From contig JAPMXV010000054.1 in the NCBI GenBank assembly GCA_026936335.1, positions 124,001-188,000 of the forward strand: a stretch of DNA of 64,000 nt, read 5' to 3'. Positions 1-40,316 of this stretch are shown piece after piece. Position 1 is the first letter of the stretch. Each line of letters opens with the position of its first letter. Source of the stretch: Mantamonas sphyraenae STR306 (taxonomy: Eukaryota > Protista > CRuMs). A model generated the notes under the pieces. That model worked only from the letters and a program-made list of their open reading frames with translations. It made no database searches and was not told where the DNA came from. Both the position numbers and the translations under genes were made by a program.

Positions 1-2044
1 CTTCTTGGGCGGCGGGCTCTTGCTGGCCTCCACGCACACGTCCGACTTGCCCTCGCGGTCGTAGATGTGGAAGAGGTTGTGGTACGAGCCCGTGGCCATG
101 TGGCTTCCGTCGCCCGAGAACGAGCACTCAAACTTGTCAAAGATAAAGTCGTTCTCGTACAGGTCGCACAGCTTCGAGCGCAGGTGCTCGTGGATCTGGA
201 TCGTCTTGACCGGCTTCGACTCCTGGTTGATGTCCCAGATGCGCAGCGTCAAGTAGTCACGCGACAGGATGTACCGTCCGTCGGCGCTGAACTTGATGTC
301 CGAAATCGACGAGATGATCTCCGAGAAGAACGACTTGTTCCCCGGGTCCTCGTCCTCCTCAAAGATCTTTGCGTACTCGTCGCACAGAGCAGAGTCACGC
401 ATGTCCGCCAGCTTGATGCTGCCCTTGCTGCTGCTGTACATAAACACGTTGCACTGCTGCGGATGGAACTCGGCCGCCGTGATCACCTCTGTCAGTTCCT
501 CCATGTTTGCCGGCTTGATGTCCACAATGTCTGTGTGGTGTGTTGCCAGCGGCGCCCACGTGTTAGACACAGCCCACCACCATCACCCACCCACCCACCT
601 CCATCCCCCCAACTCACTGAAACTCTGATCATTAATCCCCAGATTCCAAAGATTAATGCGCAGATCATCTGCACTGAGGTACGTCTCGCCATCCGAGTTC
701 AACGAAATGCTGTTGATGTGATACGCATGCCCGTTGGCAAACACCTTGCGCGGCACCGCTGTGATCTGCGTCTCGTAGGTGTTCAACTTTGGGATCATCA
801 CACTGTCCAGAGCGCGCTGCCCGCCGCCGTAGCTTGACGACCCCTCCAGGTTGTTCGACGACACCTCCTTCACCTCCTTCTCGTACACTTTCCACAGCTT
901 GATCGTCTTGTCTGTGTGTGTGTGTGTGTGTGTGTGCGCGTGTGTGTGTGTGTTGTGTTGTTTGTCGCACCACCACGAATGTGTGAGTCTCCACCCGCTC
1001 CCCTTTCCCTTTTTCCCCTCCCTTCTGCCGTCCCCATTCCCATCCAAACACAACGCCTGCTGAGCCACCGCCCTCCCACACCACGCCCAGCATGCACTCG
1101 GTTGCCCATTGGCGCCCTGAGGCTGCCCTGGCCCACCCATGCGTGTGCTAGGCGCCCCGTTGCCCTTTCTGAGCAAAATGCAATCTCTGTCCAGGGGCGC
1201 CGCCCTTCCTTTGCGCCCCTTTGCACACACACACGTCCCCGCACTCGCTCGACCCGTCCATGGCTCGCCCCATGCACCCATGCATGCCTGGACGGCGGAT
1301 GTGTGGTTGGCAGCCGCTTCCTGTGCCGCCGTGGGGCGTGTTGCAGCGGGGCAGGGGCGACGATCAGGCGCAAAACCCTCTTTGGGTGTAAACTCACCGT
1401 TGGTAGACACCAGGTAGTGGGAGTCGTTCGTCGACGGCAGCCACTTGATCTTGTTGATCTTCTCCTCGATCTCCAGCGACTTGAGGTAGTCGAATTCGGG
1501 CTCGTGGGACTGAAACTCGGTGTAGAAGCGATACTCAAAGTTGGACGCCTTGCTCTTGCGGCCTGTGCTCTTGCCGCTCTCCTTGGCCCGCTCAAAGATC
1601 ACCACGCGTCCACCCTTGTCGCCTGTGGCAATGTAGTCGCCCGTGCGGTCGAACTCCACCGTCGACACAATGTCGGCTGTGCAAACGGGTCCACGGTCAG
1701 TGTGCAATCCCAATCCTCCCCTCTCTCCCGCTTTTTCCCGTTCTTTTTCTTTCTCCCCCCGTGTACGCCGGCTCCATTCCTCTCGCTGCCTCTCTGCACA
1801 CTCACCTTCGCTTGCCAGTCCCTCGTCGATGGCATCCCGGTCGCCAAACACCTGGGAGAACTTCCAGTCTGCGCGTGTGTGTCCTGCGTGTGAGTTTGGA
1901 TGTCGGCGCCCCTCCCGACCTTCTCGACGCCTCCTTTGCTCGCGCCCCACACGTCCCACACGCCCCACCGCTCTCCCTCCCACACGCCCCCGAGCCCCAT
2001 GCCCACCCACGCCACCTACCAAGGTCGCTTTCAGTTGAGGACAT
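1..2044 (-). CDS. PPP2R2/CDC55: Protein phosphatase 2A regulatory subunit B55 (WD40), multi-exon, 3' end truncated by the window
   Basis: Spliced exons read MSSTESDL|DWKFSQVFG...[29 protein letters not shown]...[25 protein letters not shown]...STN|DKTIKLWKV...[28 protein letters not shown]...[23 protein letters not shown], which are B55 hallmark motifs. ATG at 2044 is followed by an exon ending at a GTAGGT donor. Confidence 0.96.
912..951. repeat. (GT/CA)n microsatellite in an intron (similar tracts near 13024, 13955, 16620, 18460, 20900, 47690)
   Basis: Directly visible dinucleotide tract near the splice acceptor. Confidence 0.9.
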
Positions 2045-2113
2045 GCTTCTGAATTCGCTTGCACGCGCCCACGCCGCCACGCCCCGGCCCAAACCAACCC
2101 AAAACCTGCGCTC

Positions 2114-4595
2114 ATGAGTGACAACGTCATCCGCGTGGAGCCCACACACGGCACCACCGCCAACGACGACGACGACGACGAGTCACCCACCGGCACCACC
2201 ACCACCACCACCACCACCACCACGCCGTCCATCCTCAACAACGGCGACGAGCCGTTGGACGACGAGGACGAGGAGGACGAGGAACTGGACGAGGCGGAAC
2301 CGTCGGAACTGGAACCACTGTCGTCGTCTGCCCATGTGGAGCATGTGAATGCGGACGACAGGACACGTGGGGCACAGGGAGAGGCAGAGGAGCCTTCGCT
2401 GGAGGGTGGCGCAGGGGTAGGCATTGGCAACATGCCACATGTGTCTGCAGAGGGCGCAGGGGCATTCACAGACGAGGCGTTTCCTGGCACGTTGAAGCTT
2501 GTGTCGGACGCACGGCTGACCATCCAGGAGCTGCTCAACAAACACGAGGTCATGGGACCCATGATCCGTCGCATCTGGTGCCAGTTTGCCTACGATTACA
2601 ACCAGGCCTCCCTGGGCTTTCAGGTCGAGGTGCTTCTTGAGCACAAGGCCACAGGTCGCCGCTTTGAGCTGCTTGGCGACAAACTCCGCGAGCTGCTGGA
2701 CGTCGATCACGACAACTACGTTCAATTCTACGGCATCTACGACAAGGACCTCTCCGCCTTTAACGTCTACCTCCAAGCATTCAACACAGACTTTGTCGTC
2801 CTCCCTGGCGACGCTGTCATCCTCGACATGTACCCCAATCTCCTCGACGAGGTACGCACATCATTTTCCCTCCCCTCCCGCCACAATTCGCCTCTCATTT
2901 CCCCTTCCCCCCCATGGTCCCCCTCCCCCAATCCACGCCCCCTCTCCCTCTCTCCCCCTGCTCACCCCCTTTGCCCTCATTCCCGTCCCTGATTCATGGC
3001 CTTGCGTCCCCACCCACACCAGAGCGAGGTGGACCTGGAAACCGATTACATGGCAGACGAATTCCTGAAAGGAATTGCCGAGGTGCTGGAACGCGTGTGG
3101 AGCTTTGTGGACTCGGACACGCTGGTGAGCTGCTCGATGGTGTGCAAGTATTGGCGACAGCTGTTGATGGAGAACGATGAGTTGTGGAAGCAGACGTGTG
3201 TGCGGGAGGGACTGTGGACGGACGAGTACGATCCCCGGCAGCAGACGCGGCAACAAACGCAGTACTACGACCAGTGGGGCTCCTACCTCTACGTGACCCC
3301 AGAGACGGTGACTGTGCCCACGCAACGTTACGACCAGTTTGGCAACTATGTGGACACGTTGTTTCCGAAGGACCACGCCCAGTACGTGCCTCCGCCGAAA
3401 GATCCAAGTGTCACTGAAACAGGTCTCATCGAACGCTGGGAGCCACCCACGGACTTCCGCCTGGTGGCCATTCGATACTACAACGCACGTCGCAACGTGC
3501 CAGCGCTGCTCAAGTTGATGGGCAGCACAGACCTGGCGAACAAGACGCCTCGCGATGGGGCCGACCTTGTCAAGGAACTCAACACCATGGGCATGTACTC
3601 TATCAAAGGCTTCCGCATTCCCGAGGATGTGTTTTACTACCTGCGCCTTGCAGACGGGGTACACGCAGATGGGAGGCGAATTGACCTGCACCAATGTCGC
3701 ATCGGGCCGCTTCAGCATGTGGAACCGCACCAACCGCAACCTGGCCGATCTCTACGAACAGGACGAGGCGTTGTGGCTGGACACCTGGAGTGTCATCGAC
3801 AACAACTGGCTGCGTGTGGCAGAGAGCAACACCAACAACGGCTCCATCTTTCTGGCCAACTGCGACTCGGCCAGCCCCTTTTTCGGCCACGTTGTCCTCG
3901 AGACCCCCTCCCGCCCAGGCTTCATCATGCTCCCATCCTTCACCCAGATGCTCGAGTACATGGCTCTGCGTCGCCTGGTCTTTGCCGCCCCGTCCTCTGT
4001 CAACAGCTACCCCTCCCAATCCCTGCCCGAGTTTGTTGCCAAACACCTCGCTGCACACCTCCTCTCTGTGCACCCAGACCTGAATCTCGAGGCCTTTGCC
4101 AATGGTGACGCAAAGGCTGCTGCTGCCGGTGCCTCCTCCTCCTCCTCCAACACCACCACCACCCCACCTGCCGTGGTCGACCAGGGTGCAGGTGTCTCTG
4201 TGCAGAGTGTGGAAATCGAGAGCATTGCCAGCGATGACGTGGTTGTCACAGACGCCGCCGCCGACACGGACATCCCAGAGCCCCCCACCTCGACCACCCT
4301 GCCCGAAGCCCTGCAGGGCCTCCCGTGTGCAGCCGAGTTTGCACGCCTGCAACGCTTTGTCATCGACATGACCGGTGCCAAGACCATGGCTCTCGTCGAG
4401 ACACAGACCACCACGGCCATCCACGCCGTCGCAGACCCTGAAACCATTGCCAGCTACGGCTACGAGACATCGGTGCCCCAGGACATTGCCAGTCGCGCCG
4501 CCCTGCGCAAGGAGCTCGAAAAGTTGTTTGAGAGCAGCGGTGCACAGCGTGAGCGCATGTGGAAGGAGCAGAACAGCACCTGTGTGCTCTTGTGA
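2114..4595 (+). CDS. F-box protein with SMI1/KNR4(SUKH)-like segment and C-terminal CaaX (CVLL); intron 2852-3022; apparent 1-nt frameshift at about 3656-3659
   Basis: F-box-like IAEVLERVWSFVDSDTLVSCSMVCKYWRQLL...LWK; FRIPEDVFYYLRLADG resembles the SMI1/KNR4 LPEDY..FL...DG motif; ends in CVLL-stop. Coding-like sequence switches frame at a GGGG run. Confidence 0.65.
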
Positions 4596-4749
4596 GGTGA
4601 GGTCTTGACGAGGAATAGACTGCAAGCCCACCCCCCCCCCCACCCCATCCCATCCAGACCATCCTACCCCTCATCCCCAACGTCCTGGTCACACCTGAAC
4701 CCTTCCCCCCCCTCCCCCCCATCCCATCCCACCCAACCAACCCCCAAAC

Positions 4750-6577
4750 ATGACCACCATCACCTCGGATTGGCTCCAAACCGCCTTGAAGGAGCTCCAA
4801 TCATCCAACAAGCACCTGAACCACCTTGTAGACACCTTCCACTTTGTCCAGGTACGTCTCCTCCCCCCCCAGCCTCCCCCCCACACCGCTCACCAATCCC
4901 ACCCCTCCCCCCCTCAATTCCCCCAACCCCCAACCCCAGACCTCCTCCGACAAAGAACTCATGCTTGAGGCTCTGCAAACACTGTACAAAATGCTGGCCC
5001 ACCTTTGGACCACAGGTCTGCTGGAACAAGGCTCTGTGCGTGCGCAGAAAAAGGCCAAAAAGTCCGCCGCCTCGTCCTCCTCGTCCTCCTCCTCCTCCTC
5101 CTCCTCGACGCAAGCAGCGGCTGGATGGGCCATGAGCCAATACCACGCGGTGTACACGTTCCTGTGCGACTCGATTGTATCGGAATCGACGTCTGGTCTG
5201 GATCTGGACGTGGACGCCCTGGCTGTGTTTTGCCAAGTGGGCATGCGTCTGCTGCGGCATGAAGCCGAGTCCGGCGGCGCCCTTTCCTACCCTGCGGCGC
5301 GTCTGCAAGAGTTGTTGGGTGCTGTGTGTGCCAAAGAGGATGTGAGTGAGCAGCTGCTGCAGTTTATGCTGGACACCTATCTCAACGCCCAGGCAGACAC
5401 GCTCCTGTACACCCTGCGCACCTTGCCCCGCCTCCTTGCCGACGATGCAGACATCACCTGTGTCCACTACCTCCTTGCAAGCATCGACATGCCACGCACA
5501 CAAACACAGCTGGCTGCCCTTGAAGACCATCTCCCTTGGGACTCCCCACCGGGTGCCCCCCACCCGGACACCTCTTCCTCCTCCTCTTCCTCCCGCAAGA
5601 AGCGCAAGGCATCCAACTCCAACCCATCCACCAGCACCAACGCATCCACACAAAACCACCCCATCCACTCTCTCCAAGACCTGCGCAAGGAGTACACCAC
5701 CGCCTGGCTTGCCCTGTTGAAATCGCCTCTGCTTACGGTGGACCTGTACAAACACATCCTGTCCTCCCTCCACGATGACATCCTGCCCAACCTCACCTCG
5801 CCCCTCCTCCTCATGGACTTTCTCACCGATTCGTACAACCAGGGTGGCGTGGTGGCCATCCTTGCCCTCAATTCCCTCTTTGAACTCATCACCAAACACA
5901 ACCTGGACTACCCCGACTTTTACCCCAAGCTGTATGCCCAACTCAACCCGTCTGTCCTTCAGGCCAAACACAGGGCACGACTCCTCCAACTCACCGATCT
6001 CTTTCTCACCTCCACCGTCCTCCCGGCCTACCTTGTCGCTGCCTTTGCCAAACGCCTCGCCCGCCTGGCCCTCACCGCCCCTGCCCCTGCCGTCCTCATG
6101 ATCCTTCCCATGATCTTCAACCTGCTGCAACGACACCCGTCCACACGTGTGCTCATCCACGCAGACTCCTCCCACGACGACCCGGCCTACCACGACGCCG
6201 ACGACGACGCCGCCCTTGCCTCTGTCCACATCAGTTCCGAACGCGGCCTGGTCCTCACACGCAAGGCTGACCTCGACACAGAGCCCCTCCTGGCCGAGGA
6301 TCCCTTTGATGAGGACACCGACGACCCTGCACACACCCACGCCCTCGACTCCTCCCTCTGGGAACTCCTTGCCCTGGAGCAACACTGCTCCGTACAGGTC
6401 TCCCGCCTCCTGCGCATGTTCCGCAATCCAGCCTCCTGGAAGGAACGCCTCAACGTCGCCAGCAACGCCTCGGCCTCCTACGCCTCCATGGTCCAGGACA
6501 CCCTCCAACGCAAGTGGAAACGAGGCCTTCCTCTCCGTGGCGAATGGATCCCTCTCACCCTTGATTCCTCAGCCTGA
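4750..6577 (+). CDS. NOC4: Nucleolar complex protein 4 (CBF/Mak21 domain); intron 4852-4939
   Basis: LMDFLTDSYNQGGVVAILALNSLFELITKHNLDYPDFYPKLY...FLTSTVLPAYLVAAFAKRLARLAL...ALDSSLWEL is typical of Noc4. Confidence 0.93.
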
Positions 6578-33783: not shown

Positions 33784-33914
33784 GATGGATGCAGTGCAAT
33801 GGCGATTCTAGATCGGTGTGTGGTGTGTGTACCTGTGTTCCTGTGTCCTGTGTCCTGTGCAGGAGGCGTGAATTGCGGTGTTTCGGACGGCGCCGCTTCC
33901 ACCACACCCGCGAG

Positions 33915-36479
33915 ATGATTCTGATTGTGAAAACCCTGACTGGGGCGCAATTGTCTCTGGAGATTGAAGGGAGGTACACCATGGCCACCATCTTTGCCAT
34001 GGTGGCGTACAAGCTGGGTATTCCGTACGAACAGATTCGGGGCATCTACGCCGGCAAACGGCTGGAAGAGAGTCGCACAGCAACCGATTACAATTTCACC
34101 GACGGTGGCACCATGCACATTGTCCTGCGTCTCCGCTCCTCCGCATGGACAAGGACCCTGAGTGTGCGTGAGAGACCGCGTGAGGAGACGAGTGGAAGCA
34201 GTGGAGGCAGCAGCAGCAGCAGCAGCGGCAGCAGCAGCGACGCTGTGGTGGAAGCCAGTGCGGTGGATTGGTCCTCATTCCGTCCCAGTGTGGAGGAGGT
34301 GGGCCAGGCACACGTGAGTGCAGTGACGCTGTACACAGCCATGAGTGGCGACGTGAGCCAGGTGGACGAGGTGAGCGGAACGGAGGACGTGTTTGCGCTG
34401 GAGCTGGTTCACGCCTCCCTTCGTACGGCGTTGTACGACGACCTGAGCAGCTTTGCATCGCAACACGGCGCCTCGTTGAGCAACGTACCGCTGTCGTCCA
34501 TGCCTGTGTTGCAAACACAGATGCACGTGCTGTCCCACGCCTACTTTGTGCCGTTGCTGCGCACACTTTTTGCCAAAAGCCTGGGCAGCGCCTTGAACCA
34601 CCTGCACCTCGCCTCGGGCCATCTCATCCACGCCAAAGCAGGCAGTGGGGAAGGTTCGTACGAAACGTGGTCCTACACCGACTCGGAGGGCCAGGTGACG
34701 AGCAAACACACCGACTCGTCGTTGATTACCATCAATCTGTGCTTGGGTGGCACGTTCCAAGGCAGCAACCTGCGCTTTGCGGCCACGCATCGTGGGCAGG
34801 AGGAGGCGAAAGGGGCAAAGAACGATGAGGAGGAGGAGGAGGGGAATGGTGGAGGGGTGTGTGTGAAGCAAGAGGCCGGACGTGCGGTTGTGCATCTGGG
34901 TGAACACAGCCATGAGGTGGAGGACATTGAGGATGGAGAACGCATCAATGTGGTGTTGTGGTTCAGCAATGACCCGCATGACGCAGGTGCACGTGTGGAT
35001 GCAGAGGTGTGGTCGAAACAGGTGCATTTTGTGGATGAGGAACGGTTGCAAAGCATGGGATTCAGTGCAGAGCAGATTCAACACGCCACAGAGGCATTGG
35101 AGGATCCCACCAACCTGGAAGTGTTGCAACAGCTCCTTGTACAACAGTGTGATGGGACATCCTCCTCGTCGTCTTCCTCAACTGCCTCTGCCGACAGCGA
35201 CGGACGAAGCAGCAGCAACGTCATCAGCAACGAAGAAAGCGAACGATTGGCACTGGAAGCACGTGAGGCGGCAGAGAGCAAGAGGGCAGCCATGGAAGAG
35301 CGTGGCAAGGCGGTGGACAAGGCTCGTGGCACATTGGCACCTGAGGGAGCCGATGCATGTTTGGAAACGATGCGGGAGTCGTTTGCAGAGGTGGTGCAGG
35401 GACACATGATGCCATGGTTGTCACAGGGTGATTTGGGTCGTTTGGCACAGGTCAGTCGTGGGTGGCGAGAGTGTGTGGACGAGCACCGTCAGTACGGCGT
35501 GTCGTCGCTGAATCTGGCCCCGTTTGCAGAGAACGTGATCCTGTGGGAGGGTGTGGAGCAGAAGGGACTCGATGGCGAGGAGAGAGACCAGTGGGTGCAA
35601 GCAGGCAGTGTGGTGTGGACGAAACAGGACGATGATGGGCCGTCATCGTCGACCTTGTTTGCCTGCCATGGCAGCGTGCGCCATGTCAACCTGAGTTTGT
35701 GGAATTCCATGTCTTCAGAGAGCTTCCTGGTGCCTGCAGAGCATGCGTGGATCGACTATGATGCCGTGCAGGGATACTATGAGCGAGACATGGCGATGGC
35801 CGAGGCACGTGTGGATCCGCTGGGCCAGGTTGCGTTGCATTGCCCCTTGTTGGAATCGTTGGTGGTGTTGGACACGGCTGGAGTCACTGTGTGGGGGCTC
35901 CAGCAGGTGTTTCTGCGCTGTCCTAACCTAAAGTCACTGACAATCGGCAGCCTGCGTGTGCAGACGCCGTCGCTGGTGGATGTCATCCTCGAGTACGGCT
36001 GCTTGCTGGAGGAGTTGCATCTGTTGGACCCGCCCGAACCGTGGGTGGAGCGTCTGCTCACCGAGTCGGAGGCTGTGTTTGTCAACATGACCCACCTGAC
36101 AGTGACGACCAGCCCGTACTCGCGCTCGTTTCCCTTTGACATCCCTCGCCGGTTCCCGTCTCTGGTTCAGCTCACTGTGGGGGCACGCACCTACGAGGCC
36201 CTGCTGGTGGGATGTCCAGACACAGTCTCCCTGCGTGCCACCAAGCTGGCCGTGGTGGTGATTGACACCGATGGATTCCTGCACACCCTCCACGTGGCAC
36301 CCGACCAGGAGGCCATAGAGCTGTCTGCCGCTGTGGAGCAGGCTCTGGGCAAACCCTTGTCCTCGGACGCCCAGTGGTGGATGTACAAAGGTCACGGCCG
36401 CGTGCCATTGCAGACCGAAGCGCCCAACCTGCTCACTGGATCGGGAGACCAGCTGGCGATTGTGGTCATGCGTGAATGA
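33915..36479 (+). CDS. Multidomain protein: ubiquitin-like + 2OG-Fe(II) oxygenase + UBA + F-box + LRR
   Basis: UBL MILIVKTLTG...GIPYEQIRGIYAGKRLE...HIVLRLRSS; 2OG HTDSSLITINLCLGGTFQG...HSHEV...GERINVVLW; UBA RLQSMGFS; F-box-like HMMPWLSQGDLGRLAQVSRGWR; LRR HCPLLESL and RCPNLKSLTI. One continuous ORF. Confidence 0.8.
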   Translation: MILIVKTLTGAQLSLEIEGRYTMATIFAMVAYKLGIPYEQIRGIYAGKRLEESRTATDYNFTDGGTMHIVLRLRSSAWTRTLSVRERPREETSGSSGGSSSSSSGSSSDAVVEASAVDWSSFRPSVEEVGQAHVSAVTLYTAMSGDVSQVDEVSGTEDVFALELVHASLRTALYDDLSSFASQHGASLSNVPLSSMPVLQTQMHVLSHAYFVPLLRTLFAKSLGSALNHLHLASGHLIHAKAGSGEGSYETWSYTDSEGQVTSKHTDSSLITINLCLGGTFQGSNLRFAATHRGQEEAKGAKNDEEEEEGNGGGVCVKQEAGRAVVHLGEHSHEVEDIEDGERINVVLWFSNDPHDAGARVDAEVWSKQVHFVDEERLQSMGFSAEQIQHATEALEDPTNLEVLQQLLVQQCDGTSSSSSSSTASADSDGRSSSNVISNEESERLALEAREAAESKRAAMEERGKAVDKARGTLAPEGADACLETMRESFAEVVQGHMMPWLSQGDLGRLAQVSRGWRECVDEHRQYGVSSLNLAPFAENVILWEGVEQKGLDGEERDQWVQAGSVVWTKQDDDGPSSSTLFACHGSVRHVNLSLWNSMSSESFLVPAEHAWIDYDAVQGYYERDMAMAEARVDPLGQVALHCPLLESLVVLDTAGVTVWGLQQVFLRCPNLKSLTIGSLRVQTPSLVDVILEYGCLLEELHLLDPPEPWVERLLTESEAVFVNMTHLTVTTSPYSRSFPFDIPRRFPSLVQLTVGARTYEALLVGCPDTVSLRATKLAVVVIDTDGFLHTLHVAPDQEAIELSAAVEQALGKPLSSDAQWWMYKGHGRVPLQTEAPNLLTGSGDQLAIVVMRE

Positions 36480-36589: not shown

Positions 36590-38266
36590 TTACCACCACC
36601 AAGCCCAAGACATGAAGCCAGCGTCCGAGTCCTTGACGTTGTCCTCATCGCGCACACCCGAGGGTTGCCACACGGGGCGCTTGTAGCAGTTCTTGTGGTT
36701 GCGCTTGACAATGGTGAAAGAGTCGCAGCCCTGCTTGTTGTACTGGCAGTTGCGCGCAATCATCTCCAGAAGGGCGACGTTACCACACAACCCCTGGTTC
36801 TTCATGTACAGCTTCTCAAAAGCGACGTACATCTGGCGCGAATCCTTGACATACTCGGCCCAGTTCACGAGGTTGGTCAGGATTGCGTTTGCCTCGGCCT
36901 CGTTCTTGGCCGTGGGGATGCCGTTGGGGTAAGGGAAAGGCTTGGCCATCTTGGGGATGGGTCCCTGCTTCTGGTTCATCTCCTTGTCGTCCGGCAGCTT
37001 CCACTCCTGCGGCTGCTGCTTGGTGCCAGGCTTCTGGATCTTCACCGTGGTGCCCACCTTGACGTTCTTGTAGCCCCACTTGGCGCAGTAGCGTTCCTTG
37101 ACACGCTTCTTGGGCTTCACTGCCACCTTGCGCACGGTACGGCGCACAAAGCGCACGGCACGGCGCACAATGGGCTTGCGCACAACACGGCGGACCACAC
37201 GCACACCACGACGCACAAAGCGCACGGCACGGCGCACAATGGGCTTGCGCACGACACGGCGGACGACACGCACACCACGACGCACAAAGCGCACGGCACG
37301 GCGCACAATGGGCTTGCGCACGACACGGCGGACGACACGCACACCACGACGCACAAAGCGCACGGTGCGACGCACACGGCCAATCACACGGCGGACGACG
37401 GGGCGACGCACGACACGACGCACGACACGACGCACGATGGGCTTGCGGACCACACGTCGCACCACACGTGTGACGCGGCGAATGAAACGACGACGACGAC
37501 GACGACGACGGCGACGCCACATGTCACCCACCTCCTGGTCATCCTCCTCACCCTGGTCCTGCTGCTGCTCCTCCTTGTCATCCTCCTCATCATCATCGTC
37601 ATCGTCCTGCTCCTCCTCAGCCTCCTGGTCTTCCGCGGAATCCACGCTGGGCAGAGCTTCCTTCTGCTCATCGTCCGACTCGTCGTTGGTGTCGGCACTG
37701 TCCATGGACTCAATCTGCTCGTCCTCCGACTCGGAATCGGAATCCTTGAGCACCCAGCGGTGGGCGTAGCGAACGCAATATTTCACGCGCTTCGTGGCCA
37801 CCTTGGCCACCTTTCGCGCCGGTGCACGCGCACGACGACGACGACGGCGACGGCGGCGACGCCACATGTCGCTCACCTCCTCCTCCTCCTCCTTGGCCTG
37901 TTCCTTGCCCTCCTCCTGTTCCTGGGACGTCGCAGAGTCCTTCTCAGCAGCGCTGGCCTCAGCGTCGGAATTTCCCTCTGAAACATCGGCCGGCTCGTCC
38001 GCATCCTCCGAGTCCTCATCTTGTTCCGACTCACTCGACTGCGATTCCTCGCTGTCAAACAGGTCGTCCTCATCGTCCGAGTCCTCCTGGCTCTGCTCCA
38101 CGTCCTGCTCACCGCCTTGGGGCAACGCCTCGATTGCGTCTGCGCCTTCGGCCGTGCCTGCAGCGCTCTCGACCACTCCCTGTGCCTCTTGGCTTGCAGA
38201 GGCATCTGCCACTACAGCCAGTGTAGCCGAGCACAAAACCAGAAGCAAGAGTACGGCCTTGTGCAT
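36590..38266 (-). CDS. Secreted precursor A: signal peptide, acidic pro-regions, poly-Arg and Arg/Val repeats, 4-Cys domain, C-terminal MSWAWWW (558 aa)
   Basis: MHKAVLLLLVLCSATLAVVADA signal; two acidic blocks each ending D-MW-R(10-12); VRRVVR repeats; CGNVALLEMIARNCQYNKQGC...NC; clear paralogy to precursor B. Confidence 0.8.
   Translation of the reverse strand: MHKAVLLLLVLCSATLAVVADASASQEAQGVVESAAGTAEGADAIEALPQGGEQDVEQSQEDSDDEDDLFDSEESQSSESEQDEDSEDADEPADVSEGNSDAEASAAEKDSATSQEQEEGKEQAKEEEEEVSDMWRRRRRRRRRRARAPARKVAKVATKRVKYCVRYAHRWVLKDSDSESEDEQIESMDSADTNDESDDEQKEALPSVDSAEDQEAEEEQDDDDDDEEDDKEEQQQDQGEEDDQEVGDMWRRRRRRRRRRFIRRVTRVVRRVVRKPIVRRVVRRVVRRPVVRRVIGRVRRTVRFVRRGVRVVRRVVRKPIVRRAVRFVRRGVRVVRRVVRKPIVRRAVRFVRRGVRVVRRVVRKPIVRRAVRFVRRTVRKVAVKPKKRVKERYCAKWGYKNVKVGTTVKIQKPGTKQQPQEWKLPDDKEMNQKQGPIPKMAKPFPYPNGIPTAKNEAEANAILTNLVNWAEYVKDSRQMYVAFEKLYMKNQGLCGNVALLEMIARNCQYNKQGCDSFTIVKRNHKNCYKRPVWQPSGVRDEDNVKDSDAGFMSWAWWW
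37144..37362. repeat. Three near-perfect 69-bp tandem repeats encoding VRFVRRGVRVVRRVVRKPIVRRA
   Basis: GCGCACAATGGGCTTGCGCA recurs at 69-bp spacing. Confidence 0.9.
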
Positions 38267-38566
38267 GAGTACGGGGGGTGTATGTGTTTTTCTTGCCGCC
38301 CCAAGCGTATCGGACGGCGAAAAAACACACCGTTCTTTTTCCCACTTTGTTGGAGCCCGGTAAAATCGCTGTTTCTTCGTGTGTGGGCGACCAACAGCCA
38401 TGGTAACAGCATGCCACACAATCTTGCTTCCCAGACACAGTGTCTCATGACACTGTGTGTGAGTGGGATGGCCATGCGTCCGTGCGGGAGGCGAATAACA
38501 CACAAAATTTCTCGGAGCGGAGGGGGCTCCAACGAAAAATCCCCACCCCCCCAAACCACGTACGCC

Positions 38567-40316
38567 ATGAGCAAGTTTGCCGTTCTGGTGCTCTTGGCAC
38601 TGTGTGCAGCTGCCATGGTCACAGCTTCGGAACAGCCGACGATTAGTGTCCAAGACAACCTGCAAAAGGGCGTCCAGGCCGCGAACGCCGAATCGAAGCT
38701 GCTGCAAGAGGAGCGTCTGCAGTTTGCCAGCGACGTCGAGAACGACGGCAACGACAACGCAGATGCCGAAAAGGAGCAGAGCGAGGCTTCGGAGGACGAA
38801 AAGTCCGCCGAGAGCAGCGCAGAGGACGTTGCCAGCAGCGACGACGAGGCCGAGCAGAACGCAGAGGACCGCGCCGCTCAGCAGCACCTTGACGAGTACG
38901 TTGCACGACCACACACCCCTCCACACACATCCCATGCCCTTGGCCATCCACACAGGCCTCGCTTCGTTGTCGTCCGCATGTACGGCGGGTCCTGCCGCGT
39001 ACGCACGGCGCGTCTCAAGACGAGAGCGAGGGTGGAGCGCAAAAGGCATTTCCGTTTTTTCCCCTCCAAGCTCCTTTGGCCGTCCGGCCGGCACACACAG
39101 GCACACAGGCATGACAAACGGATGCGCATGGACTGTACACACCCATTGGCCAGCGGAGGAACCTGTCGCTGACACGAATGGATTGCACGCGCGACCCCAC
39201 AGGACCGAACAAGCCGCAGCCGACTATCTGGAGCTGACTCAGCAGCTGGCAGGCGCCAGCAAGATGACGGAAGAGCTTTCGCAGGCCGACCAGGAGGAGG
39301 TGGACGCCCAGGCGGCACCTCTGGTGGCGGACGTGGCTCAGGAGGCCACCGCCCAGGAGAGCGCACGCAACTTTCCCACACTTGCGGTGCAAAAGATGAT
39401 TGCCGCCGTGGAGTCGGACGACGAAGACGAGAGCAAGGAGACGCCGTCGTACCTGCAGTCCAAGGACGTGAAGGACACGCTGCAGAAGGCGGGTGCGGCA
39501 TGGTGGAAGGTGCACGACGAGCTGTTCAAGCTGGTGTACGATCGCGAGCCGACCGAGGCGGAGCGGTACCATCATGTGGAGGACGAGGACTTTGCTGACG
39601 ACGGCGAGGTTGCAGAGCAGGACGATGCGGAGCAGGCTCAGCTGACGCCTGAGGAGGTGTCGTTGGAGGACAACGAGGAGCCGAGTGCAGAGACAGTGGA
39701 GGATTCGCCGGACGTGGTGTTTGACACCGACTACTGGGGACGCCGTGTGTTCCGCCGCATCGGACGTGCCTTCCGACGTGTGGGCCGTGCTGTGGGCCGT
39801 GCCGTGCGTGCTGTTGGCCGCTTTGCAGGCCGTGTGGTGCGCGGTGTGGTGCGTGGCGTCAAGTTTGTCGTGCGCGGTGTCGCACGTGTCGCCAAGTGGA
39901 CCGCACGCGTCATTGGCCGCGTGGCCAAGGCCGTGTGGAACGGCATCAAGTGGGTGGCCAAGGGCATCTGGAAGATCCTCAAGGCCATTGTCATGGCCCC
40001 GCTCAACCTGATCCGCGGACCCAAGAACGTCTACAAGGTCATCTCCAACTATCTGTTTGTGCCCAACACCGCCGACTGCCCCAACATCCTGCTGCTCCAG
40101 AGCCTGGCTCGCTCGTGCCAGTACCAGAAGAAGCACTGCGAGCTGCTCAAGGTGGCCGCCAAACGCTGGCCCAACTGCTACGCCCGCAAGGTCAGCAAGG
40201 GCTCCGTCTTCAAGGACGTCCAAGTGCAGGATGCCGAAGGTAACACCAAGAAGCTGTCCCAGGTCCAGGATGCCAACACCGACGAGGGTTTCATGACGTG
40301 GCGCTGGTGGTGGTGA
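38567..40316 (+). CDS. Secreted precursor B (paralog of A); intron 38896-39202; C-terminal MTWRWWW
   Basis: MSKFAVLVLLALCAAAMVTA signal; acidic pro-region ending DTDYW-GRRVFRRIGRAFRRVGRAV...; CPNILLLQSLARSCQYQKKHC...NC; DEGFMTWRWWW. A phase-2 GT-AG intron joins the two frames. Confidence 0.82.

Follow-up and report, generated by a model that had tools for sequence, protein, structure and literature searches.

Two divergent paralogous genes of Mantamonas sphyraenae combine acidic segments with long cationic helices: candidate charge-masked effectors within a genus-specific cassette family

In a stretch of 64,000 nucleotides from Mantamonas sphyraenae STR306 (contig JAPMXV010000054.1, positions 124,001 to 188,000; hereafter the window), two neighboring, divergently transcribed genes, designated A (minus strand) and B (plus strand), encode proteins in which polyacidic regions adjoin a long cationic amphipathic helix. 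A and B are intact, codon-optimised, paralogous genes, and sequence comparison places them as small members of a large, apparently Mantamonas-specific family with at least 20 loci. Mantamonads, which are gliding flagellates of marine habitats, have been described as bacterivores 'with a voracious appetite'. With moderate confidence, we interpret A and B as charge-masked, membrane-targeting effectors of this bacterivore; their secretion, the masking, the target and the role against prey are what we infer in this interpretation. The family as a whole would probably attack prey membranes.

Gene models and common architecture of A and B

The window lies on contig 54, and the genome used for all genomic searches comprises 25,061,354 bases in 78 contigs, with a GC content of about 59-60%. 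The published FALCON assembly of M. sphyraenae has 25.06 Mb, 78 primary contigs, and 59.19% GC (PMC10492846). The start codons of the two genes are exactly 300 bp apart. Gene A runs from the ATG at 38266 to the stop at 36590-36592 on the minus strand, while gene B is split by an intron, the sole frame-compatible GT-AG join between its signal peptide and the long open reading frame (ORF); exons 1 and 2 of gene B were used as separate queries in all searches. The first-pass annotation had described a divergent pair 300 bp apart with signal peptides, acidic regions, aromatic junctions, a Cys domain and a WWW tail, all of which are present where it had placed them; the intron of gene B is an addition to that description.

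The coding character of both genes was evaluated with a log-odds score of codon usage, for which five long ORFs of the neighborhood served as the training set. Per codon, the score is 0.42 for gene A, 0.58 for exon 1 and 0.45 for exon 2 of gene B, in comparison with 0.30-0.42 for the training genes. It is positive in the proposed frames only, throughout every sub-region of the two genes and even across the acidic and basic blocks of low complexity. Negative values were obtained for the intron, in each of its six frames, and for the in-frame sequence 5' of both ATGs. An in-frame upstream ATG of gene A at position 38401 was rejected as a start, with a codon score of -0.28, a third-position GC content (GC3) of 0.44, and a family consensus start that consists of M-x-K followed by hydrophobic residues.

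The two proteins follow a common plan: a signal peptide, one or more polyacidic regions, a D-x-W-(R/G)-R-R junction, a long cationic amphipathic helix, a 4-Cys domain, and a GFM(S/T)WxWWW end. Their N-termini display M-x-K, 15-17 hydrophobic residues and a small-x-small site, as judged by eye, and on this basis both proteins are predicted to enter the secretory pathway. Protein A has two successive acidic/cationic modules, the second of which contains an array of 59 Arg and 44 Val in 141 residues (42% Arg). Of the three tandem 69-bp units within this array, two have the same sequence, and the codon-level comparison shows 2 changes in the third, both synonymous, which indicates a recent expansion of the array. 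The corresponding 23-residue units abut directly, without spacers or recognisable cleavage sites. A Lys/Pro/Asn-rich linker (residues 390-493) leads to the 4-Cys core. In protein B, the signal peptide is followed by about 265 residues with a net charge of -59 and by a T-D-Y-W-G-R-R junction, and the acidic linker between the 4-Cys core and the Trp-rich tail is longer than in A.

Fourier analysis of hydrophobicity, with z-scores relative to composition-preserving shuffles, revealed a sharp periodicity peak at 98-100 degrees per residue in the basic block of B (z 6.9) and a peak at 94 degrees in the Arg/Val array of A (z 3.0). This indicates that the basic blocks are amphipathic alpha-helices, clearly so for B and moderately for A. 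In a single-sequence AlphaFold2 model of the last 201 residues of B, one continuous helix spans the whole basic block with predicted local distance difference test (pLDDT) values of 70-89. The logic of an anionic segment paired with a cationic amphipathic helix, which had been proposed from the sequence at the outset, is borne out by the periodicity of both blocks and by this predicted helix of B. Two positions ahead of the aromatic residue of the junction, the conserved Asp/Asn could equally serve as a helix N-cap or determine cleavage.

The C-terminal parts of A and B share 36% identity (E 9e-17), and the Cys spacing C-x12-C-x6-C-x12-C and an A-R-x-C-Q-Y-x-K motif are identical between them. 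A and B are thus paralogues that form an inverted tandem duplicate, from which their head-to-head arrangement is expected. Since the Cys spacing is symmetric and short helices are predicted over this region, the 4-Cys core may form a helix-loop-helix hairpin stapled by C1-C4 and C2-C3 disulfides, a model that is reasonable but unproven.

The domain formed by the Cys core and the WWW tail occurs twice in the genome, in A and B only. No homologue was found among 5.8 billion clustered proteins with a word index (A 400-558 and B 255-370, E <= 10) or among 1.84 billion representatives in an exhaustive HMMER profile search, and of 230 pattern matches in metagenome contigs, 0 were confirmed. It likewise has no relative in the PDB (sequence profile), Pfam, or the ESM Atlas (by features). 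The initial statement that the proteins belong to no known family stands after the searches of Pfam, the PDB, the 1.84 billion representatives and the metagenome contigs. The genomic pattern W-x-W-W-W-stop was uninformative, with 673 matches compared to 640 in the control, which arise from (TGG)n microsatellites. Microsatellites of this kind, (TGG)n/(CCA)n, abound throughout the genome at hundreds of sites, and because of this abundance DNA patterns of Trp runs are useless for finding further WWW-tailed genes.

A family of acidic/cationic cassettes in the Mantamonas genome

The part of A and B that recurs elsewhere is a cassette consisting of a polyacidic stretch, a [D/N]-x-[W/F]-[G/R/F]-R-R junction, and a long cationic amphipathic helix. 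Used as a query against the genome, the basic block of B identified 18 places. A profile (A4) of 14 aligned junction-plus-helix segments, comprising the SDMW, GDMW and TDYW junctions of A and B and 11 other cassette copies, gave 26 matches at E <= 1e-3, corresponding to at least 20 loci; it recovers A at E 6.8e-9 and 2.9e-6 and B at E 3.2e-19. Reading 17 of the matching ORFs shows that nearly all carry the cassette, often with a poly-Arg run at the junction, and that an M-x-K-plus-hydrophobic signal peptide is visible in every one that has its N-terminus. A and B display all the features that define the family, namely the signal peptide (by eye), the acidic stretch with its junction, and the cationic amphipathic helix.

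Family members differ in size and in what surrounds the cassette. In those of medium size (at C32, C51, C5 and C42), it is followed by a hydrophobic motif and a glycine-rich amphipathic sequence, and the similarity between B and the C32 gene (E 9e-16) spans the helix and the motif that follows it. Like B, most members are rich in Gly, Ala, Val and Lys with a clear hydrophobic face, and some run into hydrophobic, Gly-zipper-like stretches. Genes at C18 and C46 bear Arg/Val arrays like that of A, with an E of 4e-10 between A and the C18 array, and some members end in very long Arg- or His/Arg-rich tails. The C18 ORF (C18:53500-60000, ORF 732-3560 of that stretch, minus strand; 943 residues) has an acidic start, the A-like Arg/Val array, a Lys/Phe/Trp-rich stretch, a globular part, and a C-terminus of alternating Gly and Cys. 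At C32:346000-355999, a 713-residue cassette gene ending in twelve Arg and a Trp is present as a convergent, near-identical inverted duplicate, the second copy of which loses its frame after about 380 residues, through a frameshift, an intron or decay.

Two class-3 lipase ORFs also carry the cassette. They match Lipase_3 (PF01764) above the Pfam cut-off, with E-values of 2e-23 (C57:136681) and 1.9e-24 (C32:115549), and represent 2 of the 12 Lipase_3 loci of the genome. In both, the cassette comes after the Lipase_3 match and is itself followed by a brief conserved C-terminal segment, in which a D-L-V-T-R motif precedes a pair of residues, R-H or E-H. This segment is the putative carrier of the catalytic Asp and His, in which case the cassette would interrupt the lipase fold as an insertion. 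The C32 lipase ORF has three additional acid/basic junctions further upstream. The cassette here adjoins enzymes that act on lipid interfaces, and the lipase ORFs are firmer in this respect than the lead provided by the beta-hairpins of the largest members.

These largest members are giant ORFs of 1.1-2.2 thousand residues (C24, C37, C46, C47, C49, C44, C43), composed of an N-terminal domain, the cassette, a conserved 270-residue beta-rich domain, and His/Arg- or Arg/Val-rich tails; in at least five of them the cassette precedes the beta-rich domain. Based on a 6-sequence alignment, the beta-rich domain is predicted to form very long beta-hairpins with a mean pLDDT of 78; a PDB sequence-profile search with this domain found nothing. 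Hairpins of a membrane type, considered for the giants and not for A or B, are a lead only. The C47 and C49 giant ORFs are near-identical copies. Separately, the C42 ORF and the C-termini of the C47 and C49 giants contain a repeated Cys-rich unit (A-N-W, D-R-x-G, C-N-A-L-x-C, C-C-G-[WY]) for which no Pfam match was found and which may be a novel carbohydrate- or surface-binding repeat.

The only database homologue of the giant members outside the genome is a transcript of M. plastica in EukProt, P0001, which encodes 1897 residues. It is 41% identical over the beta-rich domain and retains the signal peptide, with the same M-x-K-plus-hydrophobic start as A, B and other family members, as well as an acidic run and the junction D-M-F-F-R-R. 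Conservation and transcription of the cassette thus extend to this sister species.

Proposed function and alternative interpretations

As charge-masked effectors, A and B would act through their cationic helix, which would bind and perturb the anionic membranes of bacteria in the vicinity of the cell or already ingested. During translocation into the endoplasmic reticulum and during storage, this helix would be neutralised in cis by the acidic segment next to it, which would spare the membranes of the cell itself. The latch would open by proteolysis near the junction, or by protonation of Asp and Glu in the acid food vacuole, and the Trp-rich tail would anchor the protein at the membrane interface. 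Within a larger arsenal, in which the cassette occurs together with lipases and beta-hairpin-rich domains, A and B would then be the minimal effectors that stand alone. This interpretation is favored by the amphipathic periodicity, by the position of the cassette next to lipase and predicted beta-hairpin domains, by the transcript of the sister species and by the bacterivory of mantamonads. A bolder version, which we consider possible but doubtful, is that of a portable acid-latched cationic-helix cassette that evolved independently of animals, spread by shuffling into secreted lipases, beta domains resembling pore formers, and stand-alone proteins such as A and B, and loses its latch in the acidity of the food vacuole, where it kills and opens bacterial prey.

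Several observations weigh against the effector interpretation. With 42% Arg and an only moderate amphipathicity (z 3.0), the array of A could equally bind polyanions. The signal peptides of A and B are predictions made by eye. The Cys/WWW domain has no match even though the searched database includes the M. plastica proteome, so that this domain is either species-specific or too divergent for the thresholds used, and the two genes may be confined to M. sphyraenae. In the AlphaFold2 model of B, the short helices over the Cys core have low confidence (pLDDT about 50-70). For the beta-rich domain of the giants, Foldseek returned chains of pore-state pleurotolysin, the complement membrane attack complex and perforin-2, but the hits are weak, with E-values of 1e-3 to 1e-2 (best 1.1e-3) and TM-scores of about 0.2 (0.18 for the best hit). 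The VIA hits, which include a gasdermin-like RCD-1 pore, C8, and barrels of the OmpA/OprF/OmpW type, have Z-scores of 8.6-7.8 at a root-mean-square deviation of 13-14 Å, within the background range stated for the tool, and the structure search of the ESM Atlas gave TM-scores < 0.5.

The first alternative is that A and B are polyprotein precursors of antimicrobial peptides (AMPs), cleaved at the acid/basic junctions into free cationic peptides, and that they form a co-regulated pair, the undescribed two-component system of the first-pass annotation. The architecture does parallel that of animal AMP precursors, with their anionic propiece and cationic helix; A has two acid/basic modules, the family-wide [D/N]-x-[W/F] junction could be a protease site, and the presumed 300-bp divergent promoter region is common to both genes. 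However, the cassette is also found inside multidomain ORFs, including lipases, unlike in a classical precursor of released peptides. The 23-residue units of A adjoin without spacers or defined cleavage sites, and dibasic cleavage would shred an array with 42% Arg. The notion of a two-component system was not supported: A and B are paralogues and two of at least 20 cassette loci, some of whose copies lie inside multidomain proteins and enzymes, no specific A-B partnership is evident, and the head-to-head layout is what inverted duplication leads one to expect. We therefore consider this alternative unlikely.

Slightly less likely still, in our estimate, is a polyelectrolyte material with a structural or adhesive role, in which blocks of opposite charge and Arg/Trp cation-pi contacts drive complex coacervation, for instance in a secretory-granule matrix, a gliding mucilage or a wall layer. 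The large and near-balanced charges within each protein (-79 versus +87 in A, -59 versus +33 in B) are compatible with such a material, as are the extreme low-complexity composition with its recent repeat expansion, the gliding of Mantamonas on surfaces, and the very long Arg- or His/Arg-rich tails of some family members. On the other hand, the periodicity of B fits an amphipathic helix with a precision that simple polyelectrolytes do not need, the cassette adjoins lipases, and there are none of the Ser/Thr-rich motifs for glycosylation or cross-linking that matrix proteins typically have.

Arg-rich helices are well known to bind nucleic acids and lipopolysaccharide (LPS), and A and B could be secreted polyanion binders that, without lysis, trap polyphosphate, LPS, nucleic acids or the acidic polysaccharides of prey or biofilms. 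The 59 Arg among the 141 residues of the A array and its modest amphipathicity fit this idea, which suits A better than B; B and most other members have the Gly/Ala/Val/Lys-rich composition with a hydrophobic face, in some cases with Gly-zipper-like continuations, and we assign the idea a low probability. Finally, although GC-rich DNA yields many long spurious ORFs, the notion that the locus is non-functional sequence (chance ORFs, decaying duplicates or an assembly artefact) is very improbable and largely refuted by codon usage that equals that of conserved neighbors in the proposed frames only, by two intact ORFs, by a 4-Cys spacing and tail kept at only 36% identity, by repeat-unit changes that are synonymous only, and by transcription of the family in M. 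plastica.

Comparison with known systems helps to situate the effector interpretation. Precursors with an anionic propiece and a cationic effector include the frog preprodermaseptins, the Hydra arminins and the eosinophil pro-major-basic-protein. Animal AMP precursors resemble A and B in having a signal peptide and an acidic segment beside a cationic one, with presumed masking until release. There is, however, no sequence relationship, the junction is [D/N]-x-[W/F]-R-R in place of a Lys-Arg site, and the cationic part is 94-141 residues long in A and B as opposed to 13-40 in the animal precursors. In addition, unlike these precursors, the cassette also resides in large multidomain proteins and lipase ORFs, and A and B add the Cys domain and the Trp tail. 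As regards cathelicidin- or frog-type AMPs in particular, the Pfam scan detected no cathelin domain in A or B, and the residues preceding the cationic parts are S-D, G-D and T-D, not K-R.

The engineered Arg/Val/Trp lytic peptide WLBU2 and Trp-rich AMPs such as tritrpticin and the Trp-rich domain of puroindoline are short synthetic or processed peptides that bind at the membrane interface. They recall the Arg and Val composition of A, with its alternation of roughly 4 residues, and the W-x-W-W-W end, but this is a resemblance only, and the motifs of A and B sit in proteins of 480-560 residues. Long, unbroken amphipathic helices, at about 3.67 residues per turn, also characterise 11-mer amphipathic repeat proteins that bind to lipid surfaces, such as apolipoproteins, phasins and helices of the synuclein type. 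The helices of family members give Pfam matches to Phasin_2 (21.8 bits, cut-off 24.9) and Apolipoprotein (16.3 bits, cut-off 90) that are below the cut-off, and A and B themselves have no apolipoprotein or phasin match in Pfam; compared to apolipoproteins and phasins, the family is far more positively charged, is predicted to be secreted, and has an acidic segment ahead of the helix.

The saposin-like, pore-forming amoebapores, naegleriapores and Dictyostelium Apl (PMC11542183) are, like A and B, candidate effectors of phagotrophic protists against bacterial membranes, and some of them come from multi-unit precursors. Saposin-like proteins have 6 Cys and a SapB domain, whereas A and B have 4 Cys spaced 12/6/12 and their active part would be a linear cationic helix; a Pfam search for SapB in A and B at E <= 1 returned noise only. 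Twin Cx9C/CHCH proteins have two Cx9C motifs and no signal peptide and are imported into the mitochondrial intermembrane space. With these, A and B would have in common only the idea of a disulfide-stapled hairpin, which comes from a low-confidence model; the spacing in A and B is Cx12C...Cx12C, and both have signal peptides.

Outside amoebae, little is known of the means by which heterotrophic flagellates kill and break open ingested bacteria, and a genus-specific, rapidly expanding family would provide a testable molecular handle on prey killing in the deep-branching CRuMs. In amoebae, saposin-like pore formers dominate. The family would also represent a separate origin of the principle of animal host-defence peptides, an anionic mask combined with a cationic helix, and a source of new membrane-active sequences. 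If the bolder version is true, the cassette would be a new architecture of eukaryotic antibacterial effectors and one of the rare cases of linear cationic-helix antimicrobial effectors outside animals. Were the proteins structural polyelectrolytes instead, they would still constitute an unusual orphan family.

Feature coordinates and neighboring sequences

The features of the locus and the two cassette-bearing lipase ORFs are listed in Table 1. The intergenic inverted repeat could be a candidate transcription-factor site. Its 22-nt core has no second occurrence in the 25-Mb genome, and the repeat was rejected as a family-wide promoter element because it is unique.

Table 1. Coordinates of the features of genes A and B in the window, and of the lipase ORFs that carry the cassette
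Feature	Position	Strand	Basis
Gene A, complete coding sequence, intronless, 558 residues + stop	36590..38266	-	Translation; codon usage
A signal peptide, residues 1-22: M-H-K, hydrophobic core, A-D-A	38201..38266	-	Read by eye
A acidic block 1, residues 23-133, net -40	37868..38200	-	Charge count
A cationic block 1, residues 134-174, net +20; junction SD, then MW + ten Arg	37745..37867	-	Charge count; profile A4 E 2.9e-6
A acidic block 2, residues 175-248, net -39	37523..37744	-	Charge count
A cationic Arg/Val array, residues 249-389, net +67; junction GD, then MW + ten Arg	37100..37522	-	Periodicity; profile A4 E 6.8e-9
Three tandem 69-bp (23-residue) units inside the A array	37157..37363	-	Tandem Repeats Finder (TRF), period 69, 96% matches
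A 4-Cys core C-x12-C-x6-C-x12-C, residues 494-527	36686..36787	-	Alignment with B
A Trp-rich C-terminus GFMSWAWWW, after a short acidic linker (to residue 558)	36593..36619	-	Translation
Divergent intergenic region, 300 bp, presumed shared promoter	38267..38566	.	No coding signal; contains inverted repeat 38432-38461
Inverted repeat, 13-nt arms, 4-nt spacer, middle of intergenic region	38432..38461	.	Unique in genome
Gene B exon 1: signal peptide (38567-38629) and beginning of acidic region	38567..38895	+	Codon score 0.58
Gene B intron, 307 nt, GTACGT...CAG, phase-compatible, interrupts a GAG codon	38896..39202	+	Sequence; coding signal absent in all frames
Gene B exon 2, 370 codons + stop	39203..40316	+	Translation; codon score 0.45
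B cationic amphipathic helix, 94 residues, net +25, Gly/Arg/Val/Ala/Lys/Trp	39732..40013	+	Periodicity; AlphaFold2; C32 homology
B 4-Cys core C-x12-C-x6-C-x12-C	40077..40178	+	Alignment with A
B Trp-rich C-terminus GFMTWRWWW	40287..40313	+	Translation
Lipase ORF with cassette	C57:133500-140000, ORF 2999-4252 of that stretch	-	Lipase_3 match
Lipase ORF with cassette	C32:112500-119000, ORF 2789-5758 of that stretch	-	Lipase_3 match

A fusion of the cassette with a secreted phospholipase A2 (sPLA2) was also sought: the genome search with PF05826 gave no match, and that with PF00068 gave one sub-threshold locus (C16:215771), which has no cationic helix. The ORF at this locus (C16:214271-217570, ORF 1117-1935 of that stretch, plus strand) encodes a secreted sPLA2-like protein with a Y-C-G-P-G loop, a C-x-x-H-D-x-C-Y motif and an acidic N-terminal region, and its Phospholip_A2_1 score is 23.8 bits, below the threshold. 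Next to gene A, the ORF at 33789-36479 of the window (plus strand) matches a ubiquitin domain at E 9e-13 and, weakly, an F-box-like one.

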